Positions 25,375 through 61,420 of a DNA stretch of 64,000 nucleotides are shown one piece after another. Within the stretch, counting starts at the first letter, position 1. Every line of letters begins with the position of its first letter. Location: IMG/VR virus record IMGVR_UViG_3300009108_000751, positions 124,001 through 188,000 of that record. One strand, given 5' to 3'. Under the pieces are notes generated by a model. That model was not told the origin of the DNA and did no database searches. It saw only the letters and a program-made list of their open reading frames with translations. Both the position numbers and the translations under genes were made by a program.

Positions 25375-26562
25375 ATGGCAAAGAAAGCCGCAGGAAGAAA
25401 GTCAAAAGGTTCTGACGACTTCACAGCGGATCTCATCAAGTCACTGAATAAAGATCACGGAAGCAGAATTGCTTACAATCTCAGTGTTGATGAGTCGCCA
25501 ACTCACGTGAAGGCTTGGGTGTCGACAGGCATCCGACAGCTGGATTACATTGTTGCTAATCGTAAGGGAGGCGGACTTCCTTGTGGCAGGATCGTAGAAA
25601 TCTTCGGCCCTCCTTCGATCGGTAAATCACATATCGCCCTACAAATCGCCCGCAATACGCAGGCGATGGGCGGTGTTGTGGTTTATATCGACACAGAAAA
25701 CGGCACCTCAGTGGAAAACCTGGGGCTGCTAGGTATCGATGTTTCCAAGCGTTTCGTCTTCATTGAAACTGCTTGCACTGAAGAAGTATTTGCTGTTGCT
25801 GAGTCCACAATCGCCAAGGCAAGGGGCTTAAATAAAAAAGTTCCTATCACCATTGTGTGGGATTCAGTCGCTGCATCTTCTCCCAAAGCGGAGCTTGTAG
25901 GTGACTATGATAAGGACTCCATAGGTCTGCAAGCTCGCGCCATCTCGAAGGGTATGCGCAAGATCACACAGGTGATTGGAAACACGAACACGCTCTTTAT
26001 CGCTTTGAACCAGACGAGAACGAAGATCGGTGTAATGTATGGAGATCCTACAACTACACCGGGTGGTATGGCACTTCCTTTTCACTCGTCTGTACGAATT
26101 AAGCTCGGTGCCGGCTCCCCTATCAAAAACAAAGACGGCGATGTTGTCGGTATTAACGTGTCAGCAAAATCTATCAAGAACAAGGTAGCGCCACCGTTCA
26201 GGACTTGCCAGTTTGAGATCCACTTCGGCGTGGGTGTCAAAGAGCATGAGCAAGTCACCGATTTACTGCGATCTTCTGAAGATGTAACTGTAGATGGAAA
26301 GACATACTCAGTTGAAGGTTCAGGTGCCTGGAAGACGCTGGCGGTCTCTGATGAAAAGACCGGAGAAGTCTTAGTAGAGAAGAAGTTCACCAAGAGCGGC
26401 ATGGAAGATCTACTTAAGAGCCCTGAATATAGCCCACATATTGAGTTGATGCTGGAACACATCTTGGTAAAGAAGTTTCAGGGCAATCCTGACTTTGATA
26501 CCGACTCTTACGAGGAAGTTCGAGCAGTTGCAATGGATTTGGCGGAGAATGATCTAAGTTGA
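25375..26562 (+). CDS. recA: RecA/UvsX recombinase
   Basis: 'GLPCGRIVEIFGPPSIGKS', 'YIDTE', 'DSVA', 'NQ.R.KIG.MYG.P.TTPGG.AL.F', 'KNKVAPPFR'. Confidence 0.95.
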   Translation: MAKKAAGRKSKGSDDFTADLIKSLNKDHGSRIAYNLSVDESPTHVKAWVSTGIRQLDYIVANRKGGGLPCGRIVEIFGPPSIGKSHIALQIARNTQAMGGVVVYIDTENGTSVENLGLLGIDVSKRFVFIETACTEEVFAVAESTIAKARGLNKKVPITIVWDSVAASSPKAELVGDYDKDSIGLQARAISKGMRKITQVIGNTNTLFIALNQTRTKIGVMYGDPTTTPGGMALPFHSSVRIKLGAGSPIKNKDGDVVGINVSAKSIKNKVAPPFRTCQFEIHFGVGVKEHEQVTDLLRSSEDVTVDGKTYSVEGSGAWKTLAVSDEKTGEVLVEKKFTKSGMEDLLKSPEYSPHIELMLEHILVKKFQGNPDFDTDSYEEVRAVAMDLAENDLS

Positions 26563-27023
26563 GCCTATACATCAAAGTAAAAAAGACACATCCGGACGCA
26601 GTAATCCCGCGCCAAAAAGTTGGTGATGTGGGGTGGGACCTTACCGCAGTCGAAGATGGAACCATTCAGCCTGGAAAAGTTGCAGTAGCACCCACAGGCT
26701 TGATGTTAGCTGAGAATCCTTTTGCTAACGATATTCACAACCAGATCTTGCTTAAGATCGAGGGTCGAAGCGGCCTAGCTAGCAAGCACTGTGTTTTCCC
26801 AGTAGGAGGCATAATCGACCCCAGCTACCGCGGAGAGATGGGTGTGATGCTCTACAATGGTGGAGATACTCCTTACGAGTTCAAGAAGGGTGACAGAGTT
26901 GCTCAGATTGTCGTTTATGAGGTCCATGCAAAAACTATGAGCAATAAAACATGCTTCATGGAAGCAGACACTGTACGCACATCTGAGCGAGGTAGTAAAG
27001 GTTTTGGCTCCTCTGGAAGATAG
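26559..27023 (+). CDS. dut: Trimeric dUTPase
   Basis: 'GWDL', 'GRSGLA', 'GIIDPSYRGE', 'GDRVAQ', 'RG.KGFGSSG'. Confidence 0.93.
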   Translation: MSLYIKVKKTHPDAVIPRQKVGDVGWDLTAVEDGTIQPGKVAVAPTGLMLAENPFANDIHNQILLKIEGRSGLASKHCVFPVGGIIDPSYRGEMGVMLYNGGDTPYEFKKGDRVAQIVVYEVHAKTMSNKTCFMEADTVRTSERGSKGFGSSGR

Positions 27024-33112: not shown

Positions 33113-33374
33113 GTTCGGTGGGGGAAAGTTTCGTATCCACCATGTTGTGGATGACTGGGATCTTGGGTTCTATGATGGAAGCGCAGTCAAGCTCATTCTC
33201 GAGGCAAAATTTGGCGAGCAAGAGATACAAGATATAGAAAAAGCGATAGAGTATCTTAGGCACCAAATTAGGTCGAGGGGTGAAGAGATTGAACGAGCAA
33301 ATGAGGAACAGACTGCGACTTGGCGCCCTGGCTGTGGTAATTACATCGTTAGTGATACCGAATCCGACGATTGA
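33087..33374 (+). CDS. DUF3310-like protein
   Basis: 'NHP..F', 'GF..GSAVK.I', 'QDIEKAIEYL'. Confidence 0.6.
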   Translation: MSDPNHPRKFGGGKFRIHHVVDDWDLGFYDGSAVKLILEAKFGEQEIQDIEKAIEYLRHQIRSRGEEIERANEEQTATWRPGCGNYIVSDTESDD

Positions 33375-33476
33375 CGCCCTCTCTCGCATAGCCCTTATCG
33401 GACTTTTTGCCGACTGGGCATATCAGCTATATAAACGTTCATAAAACTTAGTATAATACGTCATTGGAGCTTTGAA

Positions 33477-33713
33477 ATGGCAAAGAAGATTTATCGTCTT
33501 GATGATGAAGTGGTCGCAGAAGTGGCCCGTTCCCTACAGCGCGCCCTGCTTACAGGCACTGACATTGTTGATCACATTCGCGCTATTGAACTTAACGTTG
33601 CTCGAGGGTCAAACATGATCGTATTAAGCCCAGAGTATCTTGAAAGAACCCAGACAAATGACCAACGCATGGTCGACGAAGCTGAAGAATTATCTTTCGA
33701 GGGTGAAAAATAA
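33477..33713 (+). CDS. Hypothetical protein
   Basis: SD ggag; 'LQRALLTGTDIVDH.R'. Confidence 0.7.
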   Translation: MAKKIYRLDDEVVAEVARSLQRALLTGTDIVDHIRAIELNVARGSNMIVLSPEYLERTQTNDQRMVDEAEELSFEGEK

Positions 33714-33714
33714 A

Positions 33715-34083
33715 TTGGATCGTCTTGAGCAGATATTCTGGCTGCAAGAATCATTTATGAAGGTGCTCTCCGACAACAAGGAGAAGCTTCCAGAATGGCC
33801 TGTGGATCCTTCTGACAAGAAAGCCCAGCAGTTTATAAGGGATATTATCCATCGAGGCACAGAGGAGGCTTTCGAAGCTCTCCTCCACCTTAAGAACTGG
33901 AAGCCTCATAAGCACACCGAGGTCAAAGAGTTTGACAGAGATGCTTTTCTCGAGGAAATGGTAGATGATTTCACCTATAAGCTCGAAGCTCTTATTCTAA
34001 TGGGGTTTACACCCGAAGACTTCTTTAAGTCATTCTGCTTGAAAAACGGCAAGAATGTTAATCGTGTAAGAGGTGATTATTAA
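33715..34083 (+). CDS. All-alpha NTP pyrophosphatase (dimeric dUTPase/dCTPase, MazG-like)
   Basis: 'EEAFEAL...NWKPHK', 'LEEMVD', 'KN..N..R'; start at TTG 33715 or GTG 33703. Confidence 0.75.
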   Translation: MDRLEQIFWLQESFMKVLSDNKEKLPEWPVDPSDKKAQQFIRDIIHRGTEEAFEALLHLKNWKPHKHTEVKEFDRDAFLEEMVDDFTYKLEALILMGFTPEDFFKSFCLKNGKNVNRVRGDY

Positions 34084-34102: not shown

Positions 34103-34118
34103 ATTGCGAGAGACTATA

Positions 34119-35426
34119 ATGCCCCTTACTCGAATCCGAACAGACGATCTACTGTCAGGTTCTGTAGCTAACGGAACTTTAAATGCGACTGCGATCACCG
34201 GACAAGCTGCTGCAACGTCAGCAGATGACGCTGACTTAGTCCTAATATACGACAACGGCGCTTCTGCTCTTAAAAAGATGACGCGTGCTAATTTTACCGC
34301 AGGCCTCTCAACCACGCTTTCCGGTGCATATGACGCAGGCAGATTTATCACTGCTTCTAATGGCGCCGTTGATATTCAAGTTTCAAGTAATACAAACGCT
34401 CCAACTGAACTGCTCAGGCTTGTAGTATCAGGTAATGTAAGCGGCACCGACTCCGGGCCAAGATTATCTTTCCATGTACCGTACTCAGACACCGCTTACA
34501 TAGGTGCAGCGATTGACGGAATTAAAAGTCAGACGTCAGAGAATAACTCTACAACTGAGTTCCAGTTCTCCACGTCAGATAATAATCAAACCCTTTCGCA
34601 TAACGTAACAATAAATACAAACGGCCTAGCAGTCGCAGGCACCTCGGCCACAGTTCCCACCCTCGGCAGCGAACCTCATGCATTTTATGTCGCGACCACC
34701 GGTGACGGTAGTGCGCTGACTGTTAAAAATAGCAATGGTTACGTAGGCATAGGTGAGACAAGCCCAGATTATAATCTTCACATATCTTCTACAGGAGATG
34801 CGGCGATCTTTATCGAAGCAGACACTGACAATTCAGGCGAGGCGGATAATCCCTTTATAAAGCTTTCGCAAGACAACACAGCAGTGCAATCTATCATAGG
34901 TCTTTGCGGCGCTACTGACAAGGATCCTGAGAATAACACTTACACAGGTGTTGTTAATAACAACATGCTGATAGGAACCACGACAAACTACGGTTTACAG
35001 ATTGGCACCAACGATAACGTAAGGATAACAGTTGAGAACGATGGTGACATTAAGCTAGTATCAACTAAAGACGACACAACATCTTCCTCTGCTAACTTGT
35101 TTATAAATTCAAGCACGGGATTCCTTGCAAGGTCAACCTCGGACAGGCGTCAAAAGAAAGATATAACTGCTATTTCAAGTTCTCTTGATGATCTCTGTAG
35201 GCTTTCTCCTAGGCATTTTTACGACGTCAATGACGAAAACAACGAAGTTAGAATTGCGGGCTTTGTTGCTGATGAAGTTCAACCTGTTTTCCCCGAGCTT
35301 GTACCTGAGAGAGAGCTACCAGAGGAGATCTACAGGTCAGTAGCTTACGATCGACTTGGTGCATATATAGTTAGCGCGATTAAAGAGATAAAGCAGCGAT
35401 TAGAAGCTTTAGAAGGCGGGAGTTAA
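34119..35426 (+). CDS. Tail fibre/spike with C-terminal intramolecular chaperone (peptidase S74)
   Basis: 'SDRRQKKDI', 'GFVADEV..VFPELV', 'VAYD.L...IVSAIKE' coiled coil; 'VGIG...P..LHI' repeat. Confidence 0.85.
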   Translation: MPLTRIRTDDLLSGSVANGTLNATAITGQAAATSADDADLVLIYDNGASALKKMTRANFTAGLSTTLSGAYDAGRFITASNGAVDIQVSSNTNAPTELLRLVVSGNVSGTDSGPRLSFHVPYSDTAYIGAAIDGIKSQTSENNSTTEFQFSTSDNNQTLSHNVTINTNGLAVAGTSATVPTLGSEPHAFYVATTGDGSALTVKNSNGYVGIGETSPDYNLHISSTGDAAIFIEADTDNSGEADNPFIKLSQDNTAVQSIIGLCGATDKDPENNTYTGVVNNNMLIGTTTNYGLQIGTNDNVRITVENDGDIKLVSTKDDTTSSSANLFINSSTGFLARSTSDRRQKKDITAISSSLDDLCRLSPRHFYDVNDENNEVRIAGFVADEVQPVFPELVPERELPEEIYRSVAYDRLGAYIVSAIKEIKQRLEALEGGS

Positions 35427-35428
35427 TA

Positions 35429-37822: not shown

Positions 37823-38779
37823 ATGAAAACGCTACCACAGTTGTTCCAGATCCAGGACCAGTTCTCAGAACTATTCCAAAAGAAGGATGACCTTTCCTTG
37901 GAGGAGAGGGAGCGGCTAACACAGGAGTTCTCTCTAGCACTCCACAGTGAGGTGTCAGCCCTGATCAGTGAGATCAACTTTAAGAACCATCATCAGGATC
38001 GTAAGCAGGTGGTGGAGAACAGCATCCTTTTCGAGGGCGTTGATGTCTTCCGATATCTCTTAGCTATCTTAAATCTCTGGGGCTTCAGTGCAGAGGATTT
38101 CTCGCAGGCTTTCGACGACAAGGAGAACTACCTCCAGGTCAAGTATGTCAAGAACGCGCAGAAGTGGCAAGGCCAACCGGTCATCCTCGTGGATGCCGAC
38201 GATGTGATTGTGGAGTTCCGGAAGGGCTACAGTGAGTATCTTAATGCTATGGAAGGCATCGATGTTGACGTCAACTCCAAAGAATATTATTTCACCAACG
38301 GCATTCCAAAGGACCGCTACAATCCTGAGCAACTATTCCAGGATTTCATCGATCAGCGACGCCTCAGAGATTTAGAGCCTATCACGCCCACAATTCAAGC
38401 AATCAACGACTTGTACGACCAGGGCTATTGGATCCAGATTCTTACAGCTAGACCTGACTGGAACAAAACATGCCAGTATGACACTTATACTTGGCTTGAA
38501 AATAGCGGCCTAAAATTCCACAAAATTGACTTTTCGCCTGAGAAGATGATTTGGGCTGCAAATAGTGAGTATTACGATTCTGAGTCGATTGTGTGCGCTA
38601 TTGATGATAGTTCCAAGCACACTATGGAATATGCTAAGCATGGGATCAAAGTGGCATCGCCAGTCACGCCTTATAACGAGGAGTTGCGAGGGGTAGAGAA
38701 CGTCATTATGTTCGAGACAAAGCAAGAACTTGCTGATATCATTAAACAGTTCTCACTCCGGCGCATATTTAGCGTATGA
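37823..38779 (+). CDS. Fusion of an all-alpha NTP-PPase (MazG-like) and a HAD 5'(3')-deoxyribonucleotidase
   Basis: N-terminal 'SEVSAL....NFK.H', 'FEGVDVFRY'; C-terminal 'LVDADDVI', 'ILTARP', 'T..WL', 'AIDDS'. Confidence 0.75.
   Translation: MKTLPQLFQIQDQFSELFQKKDDLSLEERERLTQEFSLALHSEVSALISEINFKNHHQDRKQVVENSILFEGVDVFRYLLAILNLWGFSAEDFSQAFDDKENYLQVKYVKNAQKWQGQPVILVDADDVIVEFRKGYSEYLNAMEGIDVDVNSKEYYFTNGIPKDRYNPEQLFQDFIDQRRLRDLEPITPTIQAINDLYDQGYWIQILTARPDWNKTCQYDTYTWLENSGLKFHKIDFSPEKMIWAANSEYYDSESIVCAIDDSSKHTMEYAKHGIKVASPVTPYNEELRGVENVIMFETKQELADIIKQFSLRRIFSV
38764..38773 (+). promoter_or_regulatory. Putative late promoter (catatttagc)
   Basis: ATATTTA immediately before the start of 38776. Confidence 0.55.
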
Positions 38780-39447
38780 TGCGTATTACAGTTGGACAAT
38801 TACGAACCCTTATAAAGGAAGCAATGCAGGAGCTGAATCCTGATCTTGACCCAGATTGCAAGAGCTTTGCAGTATTTGATTTCGATGAGACGCTGGCACT
38901 GACGGATTCGAAAATTTTGATAACAGATGACCAGGGAAAAAAGATCCGATCTCTTACCCCCGCGCAGTATGCTCTTTATGTTCCCGAGCCGGGAGAGAAC
39001 TTTGACTTTAGTGAATTTGAAATTGTCAAAGACGGTAAACCAACTGCTTTGATGGATGTTCTGCGAGATGTGGCTGCCTGCGGAACCACCGCCGCGGCCA
39101 TTTTAACAGCTCGAGGCCCTAAATCACAAGACCCTATTAGAGAGTTTCTTGCAGACATGGGGGTAAAATTGCAGATAATCGACACTGTAAACACCTCAGA
39201 TCCCCAAGCCAAAGCCCGGAAGATAAAAGGCTACGTTAGATCTTATAGCCCACAAGTCTTGCACTTTTTTGAGGATTCACCTAAGAATCTCGCTGCAGTA
39301 AAGAAGATGGCAGAGTCTGATCGTGAATTTGAGAACGTAGATGTGATTTTGCATAAGATGGTGGATGGCAACAAGGTAGACGTCGAGCACGTCGTGTATA
39401 AAGGATTAAGCGCAATCGCAGCTCCTGAAGATTCAAAACACATTTGA
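38776..39447 (+). CDS. HAD-family phosphatase with N-terminal 'LRTLIKE' tag
   Basis: 'VFDFDETL', 'ILTARG', 'K', 'FFEDSPKN'. Confidence 0.8.
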   Translation: MMRITVGQLRTLIKEAMQELNPDLDPDCKSFAVFDFDETLALTDSKILITDDQGKKIRSLTPAQYALYVPEPGENFDFSEFEIVKDGKPTALMDVLRDVAACGTTAAAILTARGPKSQDPIREFLADMGVKLQIIDTVNTSDPQAKARKIKGYVRSYSPQVLHFFEDSPKNLAAVKKMAESDREFENVDVILHKMVDGNKVDVEHVVYKGLSAIAAPEDSKHI

Positions 39448-39472: not shown

Positions 39473-39501
39473 AACTTATAACTTCACACAAGGAGGCAGT
39501 T

Positions 39502-40485
39502 TTGCCACAGAACCTTAGTCTTGAGCCCGTTACCCTTCCTATGCCCCTTCGCTTCGGCGAGGAACCACAGACCGAGTTTGTCAATGATCTTGACGCACTG
39601 CGTGTTGAGCTTGTCGATAGTCCAACAGCTGAGCAGATGCGTCATGTGGCATATCGCTACGTGAAGGCAACGTGGGCCGACGCGCCCGAAGATACTGATC
39701 CGATGAATGCAACTCAAAAAGAGTTGTCAGAAACTCTTGAGGACGTGATGCAGTTTCGAGCACTCCCAGCCGGAATGGAGGCTATGAGCTTTACATTCTT
39801 AATCGGCGGGATCGATCTGCAGACCGTCACTCACCTAATCCGTCACCGTGCCGGCACCTTTGCAGCACAATGCACCGGTGATCGCTGGCAGTCGCATAGC
39901 CGAGTACTGGCACCTGCTGCTGTTCAAAACAGCCCGGAAATCTATGGCCGCTGGAAGGACCACATTGAAGCAGGCAAGAAGCTTTACGCAGATATGATCG
40001 ATACTAGGCAGATCAGCATTATGGACGCACGGACCATTCTGCCCCGTGCTATCGAAACCTTCTACTACGCGCGTTTCAACCTGAAAGATCTGATCGGTTT
40101 CATCCGCCAGCGATGTGACAAGCAGATCCAGCCCGCAGCAGACAACCTGATGGCTGCCAAGATGGCTCTGGAAGTTTGCAAGGTTATTCCTGAGGCTGCA
40201 GCCTGCATCGGTACTCGGACCCTTACTGCGCCTGCCATGCACTACGTTCGCAACATGCGCACTGGCACCGGAACCAACCTCTACTGGCCTGATGCCGACA
40301 CCGATGCACACATTGAGTATCACCCCAACGACACCATCTATCAAGCTGAGCGTGATGATGTTAATGGCACCAACCCTCCGCCTGATGAGGCAGGTGAGAA
40401 TAGTAAGTTTCGGCAGCACTGGAATGCGCTTCTCGCACAGATCAGTGACATCGAGATGGAATACAAGGATAAAATGGGTCGCTAA
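39502..40485 (+). CDS. Divergent ThyX-family flavin-dependent enzyme
   Basis: 'E.MSFTF.I.G', 'THLIRHR', 'DAR.ILP', 'F...R'; canonical S-x-R-Y replaced by 'CTGDR'. Confidence 0.8.
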   Translation: MPQNLSLEPVTLPMPLRFGEEPQTEFVNDLDALRVELVDSPTAEQMRHVAYRYVKATWADAPEDTDPMNATQKELSETLEDVMQFRALPAGMEAMSFTFLIGGIDLQTVTHLIRHRAGTFAAQCTGDRWQSHSRVLAPAAVQNSPEIYGRWKDHIEAGKKLYADMIDTRQISIMDARTILPRAIETFYYARFNLKDLIGFIRQRCDKQIQPAADNLMAAKMALEVCKVIPEAAACIGTRTLTAPAMHYVRNMRTGTGTNLYWPDADTDAHIEYHPNDTIYQAERDDVNGTNPPPDEAGENSKFRQHWNALLAQISDIEMEYKDKMGR

Positions 40486-40486
40486 C

Positions 40487-40759
40487 TTGCCTTTCTCTAA
40501 TCCAAACACAGCACGAAGGCGCCGGGCCATTTACCGGTGCTTTCACTTAGGTCTCACTTACTTTTCGATTAATGAGGCTCTTAATAATCAGGACGAAAAA
40601 CCCTTGTCGATCGAAGATTATAAAGTTTGGAAATCTCTGCTTTACCCAATCTCAGCGGGAGATACCCTTATGAAGAAAGCTATTATCGAAGAGGGTAAAT
40701 CCCTGTCTTGGGTTGCGAAACAGATAAATAAGAGGCGACAAACCCAGACGCTATCATGA
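40487..40759 (+). CDS. Hypothetical protein
   Basis: 3' part of ORF 40292-40759; TTG directly after the ThyX stop, stop overlaps the next ATG. Confidence 0.5.
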   Translation: MPFSNPNTARRRRAIYRCFHLGLTYFSINEALNNQDEKPLSIEDYKVWKSLLYPISAGDTLMKKAIIEEGKSLSWVAKQINKRRQTQTLS

Positions 40760-41186: not shown

Positions 41187-41624
41187 ATGAAGGTTTATAT
41201 CGCATCCCCGTTCTTTAACCCCAAGCAAGTTGAGCAAGTTGAGTTTCTTAAAGAAGCCCTCACTGCAGCAGGTCATGAATACTTTAGCCCAAAGGATTTC
41301 TTTGTGCTCAAGCCTAATGCTACGCAAGAGGATCGCACACGTATCTTTGATGTGAACTGCGAGAAGATCCAGTGGGCTGACTTTGTCCTGTGCAACACGG
41401 AAGCCAAGGATCTTGGCACTATTTGGGAGGCAGGTTATGCTTACGGCATCGAAAAGCCGGTCGTCTTCTTTGCTGAGGGCTTGCCCGATGGTAAGTTTAA
41501 CGTGATGCTTAGTGAAGCCGGCAAGTCAGTCAACACCACGCGTGAGCAGATGCAAGACTACCTTAGTCGTGTTTCCGACGCAGGGGAGCTCATCTTCGAA
41601 CAATATTCAGGATTTACTCAGTAG
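41187..41624 (+). CDS. Nucleoside 2-deoxyribosyltransferase / N-glycosidase family (NDT, MilB, DNPH1-like)
   Basis: 'VYIASPFF', 'FSP', 'DLGTIWEAGYA' (catalytic Glu), 'KPVV', 'NVML'. Confidence 0.88.
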   Translation: MKVYIASPFFNPKQVEQVEFLKEALTAAGHEYFSPKDFFVLKPNATQEDRTRIFDVNCEKIQWADFVLCNTEAKDLGTIWEAGYAYGIEKPVVFFAEGLPDGKFNVMLSEAGKSVNTTREQMQDYLSRVSDAGELIFEQYSGFTQ

Positions 41625-42888: not shown

Positions 42889-43215
42889 ATGCGCTTCGAG
42901 CTTATCACTGAAGAAAACCTTGACGACTATACCGACAACGGTGAGTTTCCTAACTTTGTTCATTATCCCATGAAGAAACTAAGAGAAGATTTCTATGATG
43001 TTAAGAAGAAAGATACACTCATCTTCTGGGGCGCCGAAGGTCACAATATAAAATCGAAGAATGTCACGTTAAAATCCATCGGAAAGTTTGACGGGACGCT
43101 AGAAGAAGCATTAGATGTCTTGAAATCTTCTTTGCCGCCAAGCCAGGTGATGCTTGTTCATACTGAGCACGGTGAGATATACAGAGCAATTGTTCCTCGA
43201 AGGAGAATGAGATGA
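42889..43215 (+). CDS. Hypothetical protein
   Basis: SD, stop overlaps the SDR start. Confidence 0.65.
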   Translation: MRFELITEENLDDYTDNGEFPNFVHYPMKKLREDFYDVKKKDTLIFWGAEGHNIKSKNVTLKSIGKFDGTLEEALDVLKSSLPPSQVMLVHTEHGEIYRAIVPRRRMR

Positions 43216-44180
43216 AATTTGTTATTACAGGTGAAGCCGGTTTTATCGGGCGCAACCTCCCTCTAGCATTTGAGAAGCACGGTCACACGTTTGTTTCACT
43301 ACTTAATCATTCAGCTTTTGTTTGTCTCCCTACAGGTGAGCCCTGTGTGCATCGCAACTCAGAAGATCGCTGGTTCTCTGTCCTGGAAGAGAATGATATC
43401 GACCTGGTGATCCACAATGCAGCCTTGGTAGGCACGGATGTGGTGGCACTAAACCCAAACGAAGCATCCCTAACTAACGTCTCAGGCACACACATCATCT
43501 GTCGTGCAGCAGAACGAGCTGGAGCTGCCGTCTCCTATATGGGCACCACAGTGATCTACAATACTGCGCTTTACCAGCGCATTAAGATCCATGAACGATC
43601 TGAGCATCTACCTAAGACGCTTTACGGCTCTCAAAAGCTTGCGTCAGAATACATCGTTCAGAGTGCATGCACCCGCTGGAATGTTGTTCGCCCGCTCTTC
43701 GCTTACGGCGGCGTGGGTGACATGAACTCTCTGATTGCCAAAACCCTCTACGCTTCTCGTGATGGTCGTGATAGCATCAATATGTTCCTGGATCCGATGA
43801 AGGTGAAAGATTACATGCACGTTACCGACTACTGCGATGCCGTTGCCCTATCCTGCCACCTGCAGATGTGGGGTAGCGACTACAATGTCGCAGCTGAGAA
43901 CCCTTATAACACTCGTGAGATCGTGGAGATGATGTCCGAGGTCTCGGGCCGCGACCTAGAAGAGGTGATCAAATGGCACCCGCACACCGACTACCTCGGA
44001 AACCATCGCCTTCTTTCCAAGAAGTTTAGAGATGCCACGGGATGGGAGCCGAAATACACACTCCTCCAAGGCATTCAGGAATCCTGGGAGTCAATCTTGG
44101 AAGATAGAAGCGGCTACAATCCCCTCGTGTACCTGGATGAAGCAGATAAGCGCGGATTAGATCTCACGCAGTTCTACTAG
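43212..44180 (+). CDS. Divergent NAD-dependent epimerase/dehydratase (extended SDR)
   Basis: 'ITGEAGFIG', 'HNAA', 'YGSQK', 'KDYMHV.D'. Confidence 0.88.
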   Translation: MKFVITGEAGFIGRNLPLAFEKHGHTFVSLLNHSAFVCLPTGEPCVHRNSEDRWFSVLEENDIDLVIHNAALVGTDVVALNPNEASLTNVSGTHIICRAAERAGAAVSYMGTTVIYNTALYQRIKIHERSEHLPKTLYGSQKLASEYIVQSACTRWNVVRPLFAYGGVGDMNSLIAKTLYASRDGRDSINMFLDPMKVKDYMHVTDYCDAVALSCHLQMWGSDYNVAAENPYNTREIVEMMSEVSGRDLEEVIKWHPHTDYLGNHRLLSKKFRDATGWEPKYTLLQGIQESWESILEDRSGYNPLVYLDEADKRGLDLTQFY

Positions 44181-48988: not shown

Positions 48989-51900
48989 GTGTCATTTGAC
49001 GATTTCAAGAAACCTAATCGATTCGTAGGCATGCACGGCCACGATGGTTATTCCACTTACGATGGCCTAGGATACCCAGCAGATCACCTGGACTTTGTCT
49101 TGGAGAACGGCATGGATGCCCTCTCTATTACCAACCACGGTAACTGCAACTCCCTCCCTTTCCTCTGGAAGCACGGCGAGAAACTACGCAAGCAAGGTCG
49201 AAATGTTAGAACCATCTCAGGATGTGAGTTCTATTTTGTTCCATCGCTTAAGGAGTGGGAGAAGCAGTATCAAAACCATCGAGATCGAGTAAAGGCGGAA
49301 CGGGATGCTAAAAAGCAAGAAGCCCTATCTAAGATCGATGTCAATAAAGATGCCGAGGATGATGAGGCTCAGGGGGGCCACGTTATTGAGGATGAGGAAG
49401 CCAGCAAGACTTACGACCCCGACGCCTTGGATTGGAAGCGCCGGTATCACTTAGTTGTCACAGCGCGGAACTTGACCGGCCTGCAAAACCTCTTCAGGTT
49501 AATCAAGCGCTCGTACAAGGAAGGGTTTTATCGGTTTCCACGCATTGACTTTGAAATGTTGAAGGAGCACGGGGAAGGGCTCCAGGTGTCGTCTGCCTGT
49601 CTGGCAGGCATCGCCACTGGAACCGTCTTTAAGGGGCAGGCTCACAAGAAAGATTTTGAGGAGATCATGCGGGATCTCGGTAATCTCACAGATCGCTTTC
49701 ATGATGCGCTAAGTCCGGATCGTTTCTTCTGGGAGATCCAGTTCAACTCCTTGGACGCACAACACACCACAAATCACTACCTGCTAGAGATGGCCAAACG
49801 CCACAACCTTCCTCTCATCGCCACCGCAGACAGTCACTATCCACGACCGGACCTGTGGGAAGCCCGGGAGCTCTACAAGAAGCTCGGCTGGATGCGTGAT
49901 AAGCCCACCCCTCTCCCCACCTTCGACGAGCTCAAGTGTGAGCTTTATCCCAAGAACGCGGAACAGATGTGGGAGGAGTACGGAAGGCATTACACTCAGC
50001 ACGACTTCTACAATGGCACCGAAGACATGGTCCGGCAAGCAATCGAGCGTACACATGACCTGACCTGGAACGAGTTCGAGGACGTCTGGATCGACAGCAA
50101 AGCCAAGCTGCCTAACTACGCCAATCCCCAGCGTTCACACGCGTGCTATCCCGAGCCGCCTGAGGACACCCCGTTCCAGCAGCTAGCTAAGCTGGTCAAG
50201 GCGGCGATGATCCGCGAGGGCCTAGGTGACAAGCCCGAGTACGTCGCGCGTGTCAAGGAGGAGATGGACGACATCAAGTTCCTGGGCTTCGAGAACTACT
50301 TCCTGACCATGTATGACGTGTTCCATCTCGCAGAGAAGAAGACGCTGTTCGGGCCGGCCCGTGGTTCGGGTGGTGGCTCGCTGGTCAACTACCTGCTGGG
50401 CATCACGCAGATCGACCCCCTCCCGTTTGGCCTGCTGTGGTCGCGCTTCCTGGGCCGCCACCGCACGTCCTGGCCTGACATCGACTCTGACGCGGGAGAC
50501 CGCGACGCGCTGATCGATGCAGCTCGAGTCCTCTTTGGAGAGGATGCGGTCATTCCCGTGTCCAACTTCAACACGCTGAAACTCAAGTCCATCGTTAAGG
50601 ATGTGGCCAAGTTCTACCAGATCGACTTCGCCGAAGTGAACCGGATCACTGGTCCCCTCCAGGGTGAGGTGGAACCCTTCGCCCGAGATGCCAACACCGA
50701 GAAGTCCGTCTTTGTGCTCAAGCACGACGACTGTATGAAGTACTCCGATAACTACCGGACCTTTATGGAGAAGTATCCGCACGTGGAGAAGCACGTGAGC
50801 ACGTTGTTTATGGAACAACGAGCCATCGGCCGACATGCTGGGGGCGTCCTCATCGCTGATGAGAATGAGTTAGCCGAGACCATGCCCCTGATCGGTGTGC
50901 GTGGTGAGCTCCAGACCCCCTGGACCGAGGGTATGAACTTCCGGAACCTGGAAGACAACGGTTTCATCAAGTTCGACTTCCTCGGCCTAACCCTAATGAA
51001 GGATGTGGAGAACTGCATCAAGCGCGTCCTGCGGACGCCTGACAATCCTCAGCCTAGCTTTGCGCAGATTAAAGAGTATTTTGACGAGCATCTTAACTGC
51101 CGATATGTCAAGCAGGATGACCCTAAGGTGTGGGAGCACTCCTATCACCATCAGAATTTCGCCCCGGGCCTCTTTCAGTTTACGGCTCAGGGAGCTCGCA
51201 ACTTCTGTCAGCAGGCTAAACCCGATAACATTGAGGAACTAGCGGCCATTACTGCTATCTATCGCCCGGGCCCACTCAAGGCTAATGTCCACATCAAGTA
51301 CGTGGAAGCCAAGAACGACCGGGACAACATTGTCTACGACCACCCCGTGATCGAGCGCGTCCTCGGCCCCACCTGCGGTTTCATCACCTTTCAGGAGCAG
51401 TTCATGACCCTGGCAGTCGAGCTCGCAGGGTTTACTCCCGGTGAGTCTGACAAGATGCGTAAGACGCTGGTGAAGAAGTCCTTAGACACCATCGGTAAGA
51501 AGGGTTCCGAACGTGACCAGCTGCGTAAGCAATTCGTGGAAGGTGCTCAACGCCTCCATGACCTAGATCCCAAGATCACTCACGCGCTTTTCGATAAGAT
51601 CGAGTTCTTCTCCCTTTATGGTTTCAATAAGTCGCACGCCGTGGCTTACGCCATCGATAGCTACTACGCCGCCTGGCTCTACACCTACCATCCCAAGGAG
51701 TGGATCGCTACTGTGCTCCAGTCAGAGAACAACTCCCCTAACGGTCTGGCTAAGACCATCCGGGAGGTCAAGGTCCTGGGTTACAAGTTTGCACCATCGG
51801 ATATCAACTACTCCGGTGAGGAGTGGGATTATAATCCTGAGCGAAAAGCCTTTGTACCTCCCCTGTCTTCTATTAAAGGTGTTGGTGGTAAAGCGATGGA

Positions 51901-52879
51901 GGAGATCATCGAGCATCGTCCTTTCCGCAATCTACGCGAGCTCTTCTTTAATGAGGAGGGTAAGTGGCGTCACTCCAAGGTAAATAAGACCTGCTTCGGT
52001 GCGCTCTGTCAGATTGAGGCTTTCACCTCGCTGCAGGAGTTCCAAGACGGTGACCTTGACAACCATCGCCAGCTCTACCACTTGATCGTTGATAACTACG
52101 AGCAGATCCGAAAGTCGGATGAAGGTAAGAAGAAGTGGTTGGATAAGCTAGAAGCCATCGGTGACAAGAACCGCGAGGAGGTCGATAAGATCATCTCCGT
52201 CTACACCAAGACCAAGATGCCTGAGATGGAGGAAGCCGCTCGATCTCTCGTCCTTGATGCTAATGTGATGGACTGGACTTACATCGATCACTTAGTAGAT
52301 TCCCTCAAGACTATCGAGCACCCTAAACCTCGACGACAGCTCCAGATCGATCGCTGCTTCGAACGGATTGCAAAGAACGGCGATCGTCGTGAAAAGATCC
52401 TTGAGCGCATCGATGCTTTCTTCGATCTAGACGAGGCAATGGGTTCTGTTGCGCACATTGAAGACTGGTCGCGTGATGAGAAGATTCGTCTCTACCAGGA
52501 GATCACGTCTGCTATCAATAATGCGTTGGTCTTTCCTGCCGAGGTGATGAAGCGAATCACCAAGACTGATATGCCCTCTGTCTGTGAGATCCCTGGCGGG
52601 GAGAAGGCTGTTGCTTGGGGTTGCGCCGCCGAGATCCAGAAGAAGACCACCAAGAAGGGTAAAGAGTTCTATCGCCTTCGAATGATCGATGACCAGAACA
52701 GATCTTGCTGGCTTCGAGTATGGGGTAAGTTCTTCGAGTGGGGTGAGGAGCGCGGACAAAAGCTCTACTACGAACCACCCGATTTCTCCTACTGGTTGAT
52801 GGAGGTGGATGTAGATCCTAACTGGGGCGCTTCCACCGCAGCCTTTAAGATGCGCAGGATCCCCCTAGCCGATGATTAA
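48989..52879 (+). CDS. dnaE: DNA polymerase III alpha subunit (family C)
   Basis: PHP 'H.H..YS..DG', 'DSHY'; 'GPARGSGGGSLV.YLLGIT', 'PDIDSD', 'HAGG', 'KFDFLGL', 'YRPGP', 'YGFNKSHA'. Confidence 0.96.
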   Translation: MSFDDFKKPNRFVGMHGHDGYSTYDGLGYPADHLDFVLENGMDALSITNHGNCNSLPFLWKHGEKLRKQGRNVRTISGCEFYFVPSLKEWEKQYQNHRDRVKAERDAKKQEALSKIDVNKDAEDDEAQGGHVIEDEEASKTYDPDALDWKRRYHLVVTARNLTGLQNLFRLIKRSYKEGFYRFPRIDFEMLKEHGEGLQVSSACLAGIATGTVFKGQAHKKDFEEIMRDLGNLTDRFHDALSPDRFFWEIQFNSLDAQHTTNHYLLEMAKRHNLPLIATADSHYPRPDLWEARELYKKLGWMRDKPTPLPTFDELKCELYPKNAEQMWEEYGRHYTQHDFYNGTEDMVRQAIERTHDLTWNEFEDVWIDSKAKLPNYANPQRSHACYPEPPEDTPFQQLAKLVKAAMIREGLGDKPEYVARVKEEMDDIKFLGFENYFLTMYDVFHLAEKKTLFGPARGSGGGSLVNYLLGITQIDPLPFGLLWSRFLGRHRTSWPDIDSDAGDRDALIDAARVLFGEDAVIPVSNFNTLKLKSIVKDVAKFYQIDFAEVNRITGPLQGEVEPFARDANTEKSVFVLKHDDCMKYSDNYRTFMEKYPHVEKHVSTLFMEQRAIGRHAGGVLIADENELAETMPLIGVRGELQTPWTEGMNFRNLEDNGFIKFDFLGLTLMKDVENCIKRVLRTPDNPQPSFAQIKEYFDEHLNCRYVKQDDPKVWEHSYHHQNFAPGLFQFTAQGARNFCQQAKPDNIEELAAITAIYRPGPLKANVHIKYVEAKNDRDNIVYDHPVIERVLGPTCGFITFQEQFMTLAVELAGFTPGESDKMRKTLVKKSLDTIGKKGSERDQLRKQFVEGAQRLHDLDPKITHALFDKIEFFSLYGFNKSHAVAYAIDSYYAAWLYTYHPKEWIATVLQSENNSPNGLAKTIREVKVLGYKFAPSDINYSGEEWDYNPERKAFVPPLSSIKGVGGKAMEEIIEHRPFRNLRELFFNEEGKWRHSKVNKTCFGALCQIEAFTSLQEFQDGDLDNHRQLYHLIVDNYEQIRKSDEGKKKWLDKLEAIGDKNREEVDKIISVYTKTKMPEMEEAARSLVLDANVMDWTYIDHLVDSLKTIEHPKPRRQLQIDRCFERIAKNGDRREKILERIDAFFDLDEAMGSVAHIEDWSRDEKIRLYQEITSAINNALVFPAEVMKRITKTDMPSVCEIPGGEKAVAWGCAAEIQKKTTKKGKEFYRLRMIDDQNRSCWLRVWGKFFEWGEERGQKLYYEPPDFSYWLMEVDVDPNWGASTAAFKMRRIPLADD

Positions 52880-53075
52880 TCCGGGACAACTTGTCAGAAT
52901 CACAAAGACAGCTGTGCAGGACAGTCGCCATCTAAATAAGTTGGGTGTCTTGCTGAAGGATAATGGTGTGGACGATTGTGGCATTCCAGAAGTATATATT
53001 TTAGTCGATGGTGATAGAATATGGGTATACCCAGACGGATATGAGGTGATTGATGATCAAGTTTCCGATCTCTAA
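52872..53075 (+). CDS. Small SH3/KOW-like hypothetical protein
   Basis: 'PGQLVRI...LGVL...ILVDG..W'; resembles 48765. Confidence 0.55.
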   Translation: MINPGQLVRITKTAVQDSRHLNKLGVLLKDNGVDDCGIPEVYILVDGDRIWVYPDGYEVIDDQVSDL

Positions 53076-53961
53076 GGTCGTTCTAGAGGGTTGCGACCTA
53101 AGTGGCAAGACCTCGCTCTATAACTCCATTCATAAGCGATCTGGATTCCGATGGAACATTGATGATAGGTCATCTTTGTCAATGTGCGTCTACGCTAATC
53201 AATATGATCGGGATGATTACTACCTTAGAAAGAACCTCACGATGGAGCTATCTAACCTGAACAATCACTTTGTTCTTCTCCATCCTGACCTGGACGTGAT
53301 TCATAACAGATATCTCGACCGAGGAGATGAGTTCCAGGATGTCGACTCTCTGATCGACCTGCACACAAGGTTCAGCAAGGAGTTTGAAAAGATCTGCATG
53401 TTACCTAACGTTCATGCCTTCACTTCAGGGACGCTGAAGGACCAGGCCGATCGATTGATGAGTAACTTCTCTGACTGGGAAGCAAGGACACCTGAACAGA
53501 TCGGTCGTTTGGCCTATGAGTTCGCCAAGTTCAGCCCGAACCGTGAGTGCACAACGATGCAGTTCCACTTCTACGATGACGGAACCTTTGAGGAGGTGAA
53601 TGACAATATTGAATTTACTCCTGGCGAGGAAGTGTACTACGCTCGAATCAGAGGCAAACTGATCGGAAAGATAGAAGATGAGCTTCGCGGCCGAAACCCT
53701 TATAAGCGCAAGGAGACAGACCAGTCACGAAGGTTTGTGTTCTCCGGAGAGGAATGCATCTCCTTCATCCAGGTTCTCGTTCGGGATGGTTTGATGGATG
53801 TCCACGCTGTATTTCGAAGTTCTGATACAGAGCGCAAGACAGCCACCGACATTCAGCTAATCCATTACCTAGGCAGAGAGGCCTTTAGGTTGCTCAGATT
53901 GAACCCAGATGAATATAAAGTTCGCTTCCGGTTTAACATAAACAGTGCTCACGTACTTTAA
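53053..53961 (+). CDS. Fusion of a dNMP kinase (P-loop) and a thymidylate-synthase/dCMP-hydroxymethylase fold
   Basis: N-terminal 'LEGCDLSGKTSL', 'DR...S..VY'; C-terminal 'SRR', 'CISFIQ', 'FRSSD.......D', 'NINSAHV'. Confidence 0.8.
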   Translation: MIKFPISKVVLEGCDLSGKTSLYNSIHKRSGFRWNIDDRSSLSMCVYANQYDRDDYYLRKNLTMELSNLNNHFVLLHPDLDVIHNRYLDRGDEFQDVDSLIDLHTRFSKEFEKICMLPNVHAFTSGTLKDQADRLMSNFSDWEARTPEQIGRLAYEFAKFSPNRECTTMQFHFYDDGTFEEVNDNIEFTPGEEVYYARIRGKLIGKIEDELRGRNPYKRKETDQSRRFVFSGEECISFIQVLVRDGLMDVHAVFRSSDTERKTATDIQLIHYLGREAFRLLRLNPDEYKVRFRFNINSAHVL

Positions 53962-59485: not shown

Positions 59486-60058
59486 ATGCCCACACCGGAG
59501 TTTAAGATATACTGCGGTCCAATGTTTGGATCTAAAACAACACGCCTAATGGCTGCTGTTGACAGGTATCGATACCAGAATCGAAATGTTATAGCTTTCA
59601 AACCTAGGCTAGACGATCGATATGATGAATCAGATATTGTCACTCATAACGGGGGCAAGATCCCTGCAGTAACAGTTTTCGACGCGGAAGATATCTATAA
59701 ACATCTGGCCGAGTCCGACGAAGTCTATGACGTCGTTGCTGTGGATGAAGCCTTTCTCATCGAGGGTGTGTCCGATGTGCTCCGGTGGCTGTATAGCAAA
59801 GGAGTGACTATCGTGGTATCTACGCTAGATCTTTCTGCTGCTTGCAATCCTTTTGATGAAGTACAACAAATGATGCCTTGGGCAACCCATGTTGAGAAGT
59901 GCCCAGCCGTTTGTCCCGTCTGCAGTAAGGATGCCTACTACACTTACAAGAAGAATGATGACGGAATTGAGATCGCGATCGGGGGAGCCGAGCTTTATGA
60001 GCCTCGCTGCTTTGATCATCACCCTTTAATGAACCAGCGAGAAGCTCATGATTCCTAA
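59486..60058 (+). CDS. tdk: Thymidine kinase
   Basis: 'GPMFGSKTT', 'KP..D.RY', 'VDEA', 'C.VC', 'IGG.E.YEPRC'. Confidence 0.92.
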   Translation: MPTPEFKIYCGPMFGSKTTRLMAAVDRYRYQNRNVIAFKPRLDDRYDESDIVTHNGGKIPAVTVFDAEDIYKHLAESDEVYDVVAVDEAFLIEGVSDVLRWLYSKGVTIVVSTLDLSAACNPFDEVQQMMPWATHVEKCPAVCPVCSKDAYYTYKKNDDGIEIAIGGAELYEPRCFDHHPLMNQREAHDS

Positions 60059-60941
60059 TCCGCGCGACGTAGATCTCGTCATCTACCATAAAAATTGCAC
60101 TGATGGATTTGGTGCTGCATATTCAGCATGGAGACTTCTAGGCAATAGAGCCGAGTATCTTGCATGCTCTCACGGTGAAGATCCACCCAATGTTAAAGGC
60201 AAGAATGTTGCCATCTGCGACTTTTCATTTAAAAATGACGTCACAAAGAAGATGATCGAGGACGCTGACTCCCTGGTTATTCTTGACCACCACAAATCAG
60301 CAATGGTCGAGTTGCACGATATTCCTGACGCCATCTTCAATATGGAGAAATCAGGAGCTGTGATTACCTGGGAGTTTTTCCATCCGGGCAAGGACGTTCC
60401 AAAGTTTGTCCAGTATATTGAGGATAGAGATTTGTGGAAGTGGGAGCTTCCTTACTCACGTGAGTTCGCTGCAGCATTTGATATGGTCCAGTTTAACTTC
60501 GAAGATTTCGACAAATTCGTTGACGATTCTGTCTTTGACGATGCAGTGAAACGTGGATCTTACATTCTCGCTTATTCAAAGACTGTTGTGAAGAAGATTG
60601 CAGCAAAGGCTATCCCACGAAAACTTGCCGGACACGAAGCCCTCGTGGTCAATGCATCACATTGGATGTCTGAGGTTGGAAATGCGCTGTCTCCTCATTG
60701 TGATCTTGCGATGATCTGGTTTCACGATCACGAGGATAAGAAGATCAAGGTAAGCCTAAGAGCTTTCCACGACAACATCGACGCGTCAGAGATTGCCAAG
60801 AAGTACGGCGGCGGAGGTCACAAGTCAGCAGCAGGGTTTACTTGGGAAAAAGGTATCGAGGAGCTATTTGACAAGCCAAAACCGAAGCGCAAAAGATCTA
60901 CTAAAAAGACTGATTCTGCAAAATCAAAAGACAGCTCATGA
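60048..60941 (+). CDS. DHH/DHHA1 phosphoesterase
   Basis: 'YH..C.DG', 'DFS', 'LDHH', 'D.DLW', 'SLR', 'GGGH..AAG'. Confidence 0.92.
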   Translation: MIPNPRDVDLVIYHKNCTDGFGAAYSAWRLLGNRAEYLACSHGEDPPNVKGKNVAICDFSFKNDVTKKMIEDADSLVILDHHKSAMVELHDIPDAIFNMEKSGAVITWEFFHPGKDVPKFVQYIEDRDLWKWELPYSREFAAAFDMVQFNFEDFDKFVDDSVFDDAVKRGSYILAYSKTVVKKIAAKAIPRKLAGHEALVVNASHWMSEVGNALSPHCDLAMIWFHDHEDKKIKVSLRAFHDNIDASEIAKKYGGGGHKSAAGFTWEKGIEELFDKPKPKRKRSTKKTDSAKSKDSS

Positions 60942-61420
60942 TCGACGTTGAATGCGGAAATTGTGGATGCAACACCACGCCAGCATGCCCTGAGCATGAA
61001 AAAGATGGTAGGCCTTCCTGGGACAAAGTTTGGATGCGTGTGGCGCATACTATTGCTGAGAGGTCTGTCGATCCTCGACACCAGGTGGGAACAATCATCG
61101 TGACGGAGGATAACACCCAGCTTCTTTCTCTAGGCTATAATGGCAACTACAAAGGTGGGCCAAACAAAGTAGAATCAGAGGTCCCTGGCCAATCTGGTCT
61201 CATTCACGCAGAGCAGAACGCATTAATAAAACTAGATTACAATAATCCCAAGAAAAAGAAGATGTATGTGACATTGTCACCTTGCAGTCACTGTGCTAAG
61301 ATGATAGTTAACGCAAACGTAAATGAAGTGATTTATGATGATCTATACAGAGATTCCACAGGAATAGAAATCATGAAGTCCGCAGGATTAACTGTTAGAA
61401 GATTTTCTCAGCCTAAGTAA
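60938..61420 (+). CDS. dCMP deaminase
   Basis: 'RPSWD', 'GYNG', 'HAEQNA', 'SPCSHC'. Confidence 0.92.
   Translation: MIDVECGNCGCNTTPACPEHEKDGRPSWDKVWMRVAHTIAERSVDPRHQVGTIIVTEDNTQLLSLGYNGNYKGGPNKVESEVPGQSGLIHAEQNALIKLDYNNPKKKKMYVTLSPCSHCAKMIVNANVNEVIYDDLYRDSTGIEIMKSAGLTVRRFSQPK

Follow-up and report, generated by a model that had tools for sequence, protein, structure and literature searches.

Does a ThyX homologue whose catalytic signature has been rewritten still make thymidylate, or does it carry out another reaction for the virus that encodes it? This question is raised by the gene at 39502-40485 of the window, the whole 64,000-nucleotide stretch analysed here, which covers positions 124001-188000 of the virus record IMGVR_UViG_3300009108_000751. 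The source assembly (235,681 bp, about 70% complete) belongs to a T4-like jumbo phage with baseplate genes, a gp32-like protein, a RecA/UvsX-like protein, DnaB, a class I ribonucleotide reductase and a DnaE-type polymerase, and nearly all genes of the window lie on the plus strand. We give about an even chance to the reading that the protein, hereafter the variant, is a neofunctionalised flavoenzyme that still binds a nucleotide of the deoxyuridine monophosphate (dUMP) type and makes a non-thymine, C5-modified pyrimidine for phage DNA.

Fold and active site of the variant

The variant matched the Pfam Thy1 family (PF02511) over residues 38-231 with 67.4 bits (cut-off 24.8; E 1.9e-18), and it also matched a PHROG annotated as thymidylate synthase. 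An AlphaFold2 model built from a 67-sequence alignment reached a pLDDT of 89.1 and a pTM of 0.88. Its top Foldseek matches were all ThyX (E about 1e-9), and VIA-align superposed it on Mycobacterium tuberculosis ThyX (3gwc) with a Z of 17.0 and an rmsd of 3.1 over 214 residues, followed by PolB (Z 15.8) and Thermotoga maritima ThyX (Z 15.7), with no unrelated fold above Z 7. Since every strong structural match is a ThyX, the modelled protein is placed as a true member of this fold family; compared with canonical ThyX as a group (PF02511; T. maritima TM0449, M. tuberculosis), Z ranges over 15-17 and the rmsd over 2.6-3.1 for about 200-214 residues. On the NCBIfam thyX equivalog model TIGR02170, the variant scored only 50.1 bits, under the cut-off of 87.9, while a co-resident canonical paralogue (P0123) scored 155.5 bits. 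No ThyA (fold PF00303) was matched in this phage's genome or in 21 related contigs >100 kb.

The reading frame itself, as proposed by an earlier sequence-only reading, is open and encodes 327 amino acids. It begins with TTG at a codon that is ATG in 58 of 80 related loci, and the protein is conserved from Pro2 on, so the start position is sound. A minus-strand open reading frame overlapping the gene (39835-40530) was rejected as a shadow of the conserved plus-strand frame.

One difference from ThyX lies in the loop formed by residues 114-128 (RHRAGTFAAQCTGDR), which matches 39841-39885 exactly. It reads RHR-x7-C-T-G-D-R in place of RHR-x7-S-x-R-Y, and the S-x-R-Y signature is thus absent. Three alignments (HMMER against the M. 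tuberculosis and T. maritima ThyX, and MAFFT against the co-resident canonical ThyX) set Cys124 on Ser88, Gly126 on Arg90 and Asp127 on Tyr91 in T. maritima numbering, thereby reproducing the Ser-to-Cys, Arg-to-Gly and Tyr-to-Asp changes that the sequence-only reading had drawn. As in M. tuberculosis ThyX, 22 residues separate RHR from the Pro conserved next, so that no net insertion or deletion is required, and the N-terminal register of the loop is fixed by a conserved S-[FYW] pair after RHR-xx. This gapless mapping is the most economical among several possible ones. Arg128 is followed in the family by W, F, D or S, so the variant loop holds no equivalent of Tyr91. Each of the 122 homologues examined, with identities reaching down to 50% and that of Geobacillus phage GR1 among them, carries AQCTGDR unchanged, and the 67-sequence alignment, with members as low as 51% identical to the window protein, holds 63 invariant columns; the rewiring is therefore not a product of chance.

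Replacement extends beyond the loop. The position of the T. maritima folate-stacking His53 is Leu88 in 100% of variants and His in 100% of co-resident canonical ThyX, Asn85/Glu86 became Ala121/Ala122, and Glu144, present in 100% of the same canonical proteins, became Met174. In ThyX, His53 stacks on the folate pteridine and is hydrogen-bonded by Tyr91 and Asn85, and mutation of Tyr91 slows flavin oxidation about 1000-fold (PMC11940539); the S88A, R90A and Y91A mutants of the T. maritima enzyme are strongly slowed in using up the flavin carbinolamine (PMC8316439). His53 and both of its partners are replaced in the variant. By contrast, the equivalents of Glu58, of the RHR motif that binds flavin and nucleotide phosphate (R114-H115-R116), of the Arg in A-R147-xx-L-P (R177), and of Asn163 (N193), Arg174 (R204) and Gln180 (Q210) are kept and invariant. 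The three arginines that bind or activate dUMP (R78, R147 and R174) thus align with invariant R114, R177 and R204, R174 being the residue that activates dUMP by favouring N3 deprotonation (PMC8316439).

Judged from these alignments, the nucleotide-binding and activating half of the site is conserved, and the folate/methylene-transfer half is replaced as a block. The sequence-only reading had suggested an altered substrate or an altered chemistry. Its chemical part gains indirect support from the replacement of the S88/R90/Y91 triad, whose mutation in the T. maritima enzyme slows methyl transfer (PMC8316439, PMC11940539), and of His53 and Asn85; its substrate part is not supported, because the phosphate-clamping and uracil-activating arginines are kept and a dCMP deaminase and a dUTPase encoded in the window supply dUMP.

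The variant further differs from canonical ThyX by about 30 extra N-terminal residues and by about 55 residues inserted before the last helix, in which H247, R253, TNLY-x-P (258-263), D277, I279 and Y280 are invariant. In the model, helix 302-324, which follows this segment, superposes on the last helix of ThyX. The long C-terminal extension described by the sequence-only reading is therefore real and conserved, and structurally looks like an insert ahead of the terminal helix.

Distribution of the variant and coexistence with canonical ThyX

A word-based search recovered 1342 relatives (clusters at 90% identity), the best 120 of which all measure 313-335 aa, and 220 loci of the family were found in IMG/VR. 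A hidden Markov model (HMM) search of 1.84 billion representatives, clustered at 50% identity, gave 73 matches at E<=1e-30, 299 at E<=1e-10 and 1699 at E<=1e-3, canonical S-x-R-Y sequences entering the list only at about E 1e-16. GR1 (OK896991; protein UDY80709) is the sole carrier of the variant among 50,697 deposited phage genomes, and 185,579 prokaryote genomes (one per species) yielded a single match. This sole cellular match is a 26-kb contig (L132, PBHZ01000014.1) of a metagenome-assembled genome labelled 'Methanobacteriota archaeon', which encodes a gp32-like protein, RecA, an exonuclease, DnaB, a nucleoside 2-deoxyribosyltransferase (NDT), the variant and DnaE, and which looks like a phage contig binned with the archaeon. 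The family is thus essentially virus-only and, except for GR1, known only from metagenomes. Ten representative relatives bore no name in any source, and literature searches on ThyX-like proteins, ThyX in phages and jumbo phages, ThyX paralogues and GR1 returned no description of the clade.

The long, insert-bearing relatives form a graded series that runs from AQCTGDR through CSGDK and QCTADR to QC[ST]GD-x-D-x-RH, with RxR replacing RHR. Some branches lack the Cys (QGTGDR, QTHADR, QAHGDR), and the Asp-Arg/Lys pair is the most constant feature. Among other cultured phages, non-canonical loops were also seen in Xanthomonas phage XcP1 (L137 5920-6678; RTR...ETSRAL with a C-terminal Cys cluster) and in Mycobacterium phage Onyinye (L138 3824-4756; RSR...QSMRASY), so the loop diversity of viral ThyX is wider than the QCTGDR clade. 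Mobile elements have entered two ThyX-like representatives (P0153 and P0271), bringing an HNH/His-Me endonuclease domain in one case and an intein with Hint and splicing domains in the other.

Many relatives encode the variant and a canonical enzyme side by side, in the same setting of phage nucleotide metabolism. A second Thy1 gene occurs in 12 of the 21 related contigs >100 kb, where its score is 116-167 bits and that of the variant 55-81 bits; a canonical S-x-R-Y ThyX shares the contig with the variant in 14/26 relatives (12/21 and 2/5), and both are present in four of the five related contigs of at least 200 kb. Two types can be told apart among these second genes (RHR-x7-S-R-R-Y and KHR-x8-S-A-R-Y), both with S-x-R-Y, His53 and Glu144, and a distant PolA-type phage likewise combines a long variant with an S-R-R-Y Thy1. 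In a quick maximum-likelihood tree, the variants form a group apart from the two canonical types (SH-aLRT support 100%), and the GR1 variant is nested among marine sequences.

In two close relatives, with variants 85% identical to this one, the canonical ThyX lies about 7 kb upstream. In one of them (L013) the gene sits between an SLT lysozyme gene and a 76-aa open reading frame; the corresponding slot of the window (33113-33476) is empty, and tblastn detected no remnant of a canonical ThyX in it. Since the canonical copy comes and goes among relatives, it is dispensable, and the variant is constant. This frequent co-residence argues that the variant probably makes something other than plain thymidylate. 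The same view, already taken by the sequence-only reading, gains indirect support from the replaced residues, the new loop without variation in the family, the low TIGR02170 score, the coexistence and the near-absence from cellular genomes.

A precedent exists in PolB (4p5a/4p5b), the C5-methylase of UMP/dUMP in polyoxin biosynthesis and the only characterised neofunctionalised ThyX paralogue, which also coexists with a housekeeping ThyX. It differs in being still a methylase, of changed sugar specificity, from a bacterial biosynthetic cluster, whereas the variant sits among phage replication genes; PolB matched the variant profile with E 0.002 over 35 residues, which does not indicate specific kinship.

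The nucleotide-pool genes around the variant

Genes within 10 kb of the variant were counted at 84-85 loci by two methods, hence the ranges given below and in the table. The examination of the neighbourhoods of QCTGDR homologues, which the sequence-only reading had advised, uncovered a nucleotide-pool module conserved across 84 loci. Its constant member is NDT, which adjoins distant variants as well, matches PDB entry 6evs (E 9e-15) and keeps the catalytic Glu. A fusion of an all-alpha NTP-pyrophosphatase-like domain with an NT5C-type HAD 5'-deoxynucleotidase occurs at 75-76 loci, always upstream on the same strand with a median gap of 228 bp; a PDB sequence search with it gave no match. A separate all-alpha dNTP pyrophosphatase, with homologues annotated as dUTPase/MazG in Gordonia phages, holds the full set of acidic motifs and directly follows the gene of a conserved 79-aa protein. 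The N-domain of the fusion (37823-38160) is a paralogue of this free enzyme (hhalign probability 97.8%) without several of the EExxE-type acidic residues (HSEVS vs VEEmFE), and may be catalytically degenerate. Two tail-fibre-like genes at 34104-37777, one for a 440-aa product containing the Peptidase_S74 chaperone domain and one for a repeat protein of 782 aa, separate the pyrophosphatase from the fusion here; because the two adjoin in most relatives, the fibre genes look like an insertion that split the module.

The presence of a trimeric dUTPase elsewhere in the window leaves room for a different specificity of the all-alpha pyrophosphatase, which could be a dCTPase of the T4 gp56 kind. The variant would then be a flavin-dependent methylase, hydroxymethylase or hydroxylase of dCMP, with Cys124 as the C6 nucleophile and Asp127 reading N3/N4 of cytosine. 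The invariance of the loop Cys and Asp pair fits such an enzyme, as does the Asn177-to-Asp switch logic of ThyA-type dCMP enzymes (PMC13326640), and the coexistence with a canonical ThyX and a thymidine kinase resembles the situation in phages of the 5-hydroxymethylcytosine type such as T4. The equivalent of R174 is nevertheless invariant, and N3 deprotonation, suited to uracil, is ill-suited to cytosine, which makes this substrate less likely; moreover, the Cys is lost in some subclades and the dNMP nucleotidase of the module would drain dCMP. We hold a cytosine substrate to be unlikely.

The partners also recur around the variants of unrelated phages. GR1 and L140 read NDT, an HD/YfbR-like 5'-deoxynucleotidase, a few genes, variant and DnaE; L136 reads dUTPase_2, NDT, a YfbR-like HD enzyme and variant; L133 reads PolB, NDT, a Tmk-like kinase and a GT2-like domain fused to the variant; and L135 reads an NT5C protein, a 217-aa protein and variant. 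Because HAD and HD nucleotidases displace each other non-homologously, the nucleotidase activity itself belongs to the module. The Tmk-like protein of the window is homologous to the small kinases that adjoin the variant in GR1 and L133.

This constancy of NDT and 5'-nucleotidase, the latter kept through non-homologous displacement, would also suit a route to a free modified nucleoside or base, in which the variant would modify a dNMP, the nucleotidase would remove its phosphate and NDT would exchange or release the base, or a role in salvage only. Pairs of thymidylate-synthase-like and NDT-like enzymes are known from nucleoside-antibiotic pathways (MilA/MilB), NDT is close to the true nucleoside transferase 6evs, and PolB is a ThyX paralogue that serves secondary metabolism. 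Such a free product is improbable, however, given that the Tmk-like kinase and a DNA polymerase are regular neighbours, that the genes sit in the replication block of lytic phages, and that they are not accompanied by the export or tailoring genes usual in antibiotic clusters.

GR1, a siphovirus of a thermophilic Firmicute host, shares with this marine T4-like phage 50% identity in the variant and 41% in NDT, its two most similar proteins, against only 21% in DnaE and ribonucleotide reductase, which argues that the variant and NDT were transferred together. This joint movement between unrelated phages, the 1342 homologues and the 63 invariant columns, which include the new loop and the flavin- and nucleotide-binding residues, speak against a catalytically dead ThyX relic in a structural or regulatory role; the loss of residues needed for the canonical reaction would fit one, and we regard it as very improbable. 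The GR1 gene immediately upstream of its variant (L002 7286-7885) is annotated as NAD(P)H nitroreductase/dihydropteridine reductase, and could encode a flavin reductase for an enzyme that lacks the NADPH/folate site of ThyX. GR1 also encodes an amidoligase and a gamma-glutamylcyclotransferase.

An epimerase/dehydratase, a nucleotidyltransferase, an aminotransferase and GT8 are frequent neighbours, and this company of sugar-nucleotide enzymes and glycosyltransferases is suggestive of a link to glycosylation. In P0137, a distant variant, the fused GT2-like N-domain gave a sub-threshold Pfam match with the motifs IIIPCYKRE and HDND. It has two homologues only, an AlphaFold2 pLDDT of 52 and Foldseek matches to generic Rossmann-like folds, and it found no match in a PDB sequence search.

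Coordinates of the variant, its parts and the genes discussed, in positions of the window
Feature	Position	Strand	Evidence or remark
ThyX-fold variant gene	39502..40485	+	327 aa, TTG start, Pfam Thy1 67.4 bits, AlphaFold2 pLDDT 89.1
Ribosome-binding site AAGGAGG	39490..39496	+	5 nt upstream of the TTG start
Leu88 codon, position of the T. maritima ThyX folate-stacking His53	39763..39765	+	alignment
Rewired active-site loop RHR-x7-C-T-G-D-R (residues 114-128)	39841..39885	+	alignments, AQCTGDR in 122/122
Family insert, about residues 245-300, with TNLY-x-P and D-x-I-Y motifs	40234..40401	+	absent from canonical ThyX
Nucleoside 2-deoxyribosyltransferase (NDT)	41187..41624	+	Pfam E 1.5e-16; 79/84 loci
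All-alpha NTP-pyrophosphatase-like N-domain fused to NT5C-type HAD 5'-deoxynucleotidase	37823..38779	+	Pfam dUTPase_2, NT5C; PHROGs
Second HAD-like phosphatase, DFDETL motif, lineage-specific	38776..39447	+	18-19 loci
All-alpha dNTP pyrophosphatase (dimeric dUTPase/MazG-like, P0124)	33640..34083	+	81 of 85 loci
Conserved 79-aa protein of unknown function (P0125)	33477..33713	+	77 of 85 loci
Empty slot, where L013 carries a canonical 238-aa ThyX	33113..33476		locus comparison
NAD-dependent sugar-nucleotide epimerase/dehydratase, frequent neighbour	43212..44180	+	53-64 loci
DnaE polymerase	48989..52879		62 loci
Tmk-like P-loop kinase-domain protein	53050..53961	+	weak dTMP-kinase N-terminal match; 30/84 loci
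Trimeric dUTPase, dUMP supply	26559..27023	+	
dCMP deaminase, dUMP supply	60938..61420	+	
Thymidine kinase	59486..60058	+	

Beyond the enzymes of the table, the window encodes a GMP reductase/IMPDH-family enzyme (57563-58588, 365 bits) and a protein with a Fe/Mn superoxide dismutase C-terminal domain (61750-62436). The DnaE-type polymerase (Pol III alpha, PHP) of 1296 aa at 48989-52879 is accompanied by a 396-aa protein with a partial family-A domain (22021-23211). The only clear minus-strand gene (47780-48451), which lies between the helicase block and DnaE, is cytidylyl/adenylyltransferase-like (NMNAT-like). A direct repeat (607-753 and 1150-1296; 147 nt, 87% identical, with a core of 99 identical bases) has its copies spaced 543 nt apart, overlapping the starts of two small open reading frames.

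Predicted chemistry and its significance

In the mechanism that we favour, the variant would bind FAD, with a pyrimidine deoxynucleotide of the dUMP type stacked against the flavin, and the activated C5 would meet a different electrophile or a different fate, as suggested by the loss of the methylene-transfer residues, His53, Asn85, Ser88, Arg90 and Tyr91 having given way to Leu88, Ala121 and Cys-Thr-Gly-Asp-Arg. The predicted product is a non-thymine 5-substituted pyrimidine nucleotide, with the 5-hydroxy and 5-hydroxymethyl forms as candidates. It could arise by C5 hydroxylation with flavin and O2, through water or another nucleophile capturing the exocyclic methylene, or by oxidation of deoxythymidine monophosphate (dTMP) supplied by a canonical ThyX. 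The module as a whole would edit the deoxynucleotide pool and feed the new nucleotide into phage DNA: the pyrophosphatase would convert dNTP to dNMP, the nucleotidase would release the deoxynucleoside, NDT would exchange the base, the variant would act at C5 of the dUMP-type nucleotide, and the Tmk-like kinase and thymidine kinase would phosphorylate. Ordinary dTMP would come from the canonical ThyX where present, or from the host.

Several observations weigh against this reading. Every module gene (dUTPase-like, Tmk-like, thymidine kinase, NDT and nucleotidase) also fits dU/dT metabolism, so the context alone is compatible with dTMP synthesis; for this reason, the role in a modification pathway put forward by the sequence-only reading does not follow from the neighbours, which are nucleotide-pool enzymes that equally fit a dTTP-supply module. 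The variant is the sole Thy1/ThyA homologue in the 235 kb (about 70% complete) available for this phage as well as in the complete genome of GR1, and both phages carry dCMP deaminase, dUTPase and thymidine kinase, the classical set of a thymidylate synthase. The loop can be aligned in more than one way: HMMER against Corynebacterium glutamicum ThyX inserts 'TG', so that D-R-F pairs with Q-R-F, hhalign gaps the loop in yet another way, and Arg128 may in part stand in for Arg90. In the PDB, the variant profile best matches 3g4c, the crystallised T. maritima ThyX mutant S88C, which reportedly retains some activity. Since branches of the wider clade lack the Cys, it cannot serve all family members as an indispensable nucleophile. 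The fusion with a GT2-like domain, being below the Pfam cut-off, is a putative one, and for all family members the product, the cofactor and the DNA modification are predictions.

The standing of the variant as sole Thy1/ThyA homologue and the nature of its neighbours would suit a thymidylate synthase proper, if a divergent one, that converts dUMP to dTMP within a dTTP supply or salvage unit. Its loop would be re-registered, with Cys124 serving for Ser88, Arg128 for Arg90 and a Tyr of the insert for Tyr91, perhaps with another C1 donor or reductant. The retained dUMP-binding and dUMP-activating arginines are consistent with it, as is the R-F held in register with the C. glutamicum enzyme; the invariant Tyr261 and Tyr280 of the insert could form a lid, and formaldehyde can be used by ThyX as a methylene source (PMC8316439). 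On the other side stand the replacement of the entire H53/N85/Y91 network and S88/R90/Y91 triad, the canonical ThyX co-resident in 14/26 relatives and in a distant lineage, the equivalog score, the restriction to viruses of an enzyme for which the need is universal, and a conserved dNMP 5'-nucleotidase that would be counter-productive for dTMP supply. We consider thymidylate synthesis a less likely but not negligible alternative, the strongest of those weighed here.

The favoured reading, a new C5 chemistry on dUMP, has parallels among phage enzymes of another fold. To our knowledge, the known phage routes to modified pyrimidine nucleotides all start from ThyA-fold enzymes. T4 gp42 dCMP hydroxymethylase and the 5-hydroxy-dCMP synthases RB69 gp48 and DLP3 gp80 are thymidylate synthase homologues re-tooled by few active-site changes; the RB69-type homologues use flavin and O2, and the resulting hydroxymethyl- or hydroxy-pyrimidines are glycosylated with phage-made NDP-sugars (PMC13326640). 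As in the setting of the variant, their partners are a dNMP kinase and a dNTP pyrophosphatase together with glycosyltransferases and enzymes of sugar-nucleotide metabolism; the ThyA-fold enzymes differ by their unrelated fold, their known products and the lack of a described NDT or 5'-nucleotidase partner.

Another parallel is offered by Bacillus phages with 5-hydroxymethyluracil or uracil in their DNA (SPO1/phi-e/PBS2-type). They edit their pools with dTTPase/dUTPase, dTMP nucleotidase and dUMP hydroxymethylase, and the activities predicted for the variant module form the same set (pyrophosphatase, nucleotidase, thymidylate-synthase-like enzyme, dCMP deaminase and kinase). Their hydroxymethylase is of the ThyA fold and thymine is excluded altogether, whereas relatives of the variant often keep ThyX and thymidine kinase. 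Total thymine exclusion on the SPO1 scheme is unlikely here for this reason, and was set aside.

Extending this reading to the wider QC[ST]GD clade is more tentative: with a probability that we place short of even, the clade may be an unrecognised class of viral flavoenzymes on the ThyX scaffold. Its members would dispense with folate-dependent methyl transfer and produce a pyrimidine deoxynucleotide outside the canonical set, for example 5-hydroxy- or 5-hydroxymethyl-dUMP. If so, marine jumbo phages and phages of Firmicutes would possess a new and widespread route to thymidine-type DNA hypermodification, in which nucleotidase, NDT and kinase would recycle the deoxyribose and load the new base, and glycosylation may follow.

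Whatever its product, the family is large and restricted to viruses, with its methyl-transfer apparatus systematically replaced and its nucleotide-activating part kept, and the cultured Geobacillus phage GR1 makes its function directly testable. Should the variant be a thymidylate synthase, residues thought essential for ThyX catalysis would prove dispensable. Should it make a new base, some of the DNA chemistry that is still unexplored in abundant marine jumbo phages would be accounted for; flavoenzymes would gain a new reaction, and the gene could serve as a marker with which modified genomes are found in metagenomes.

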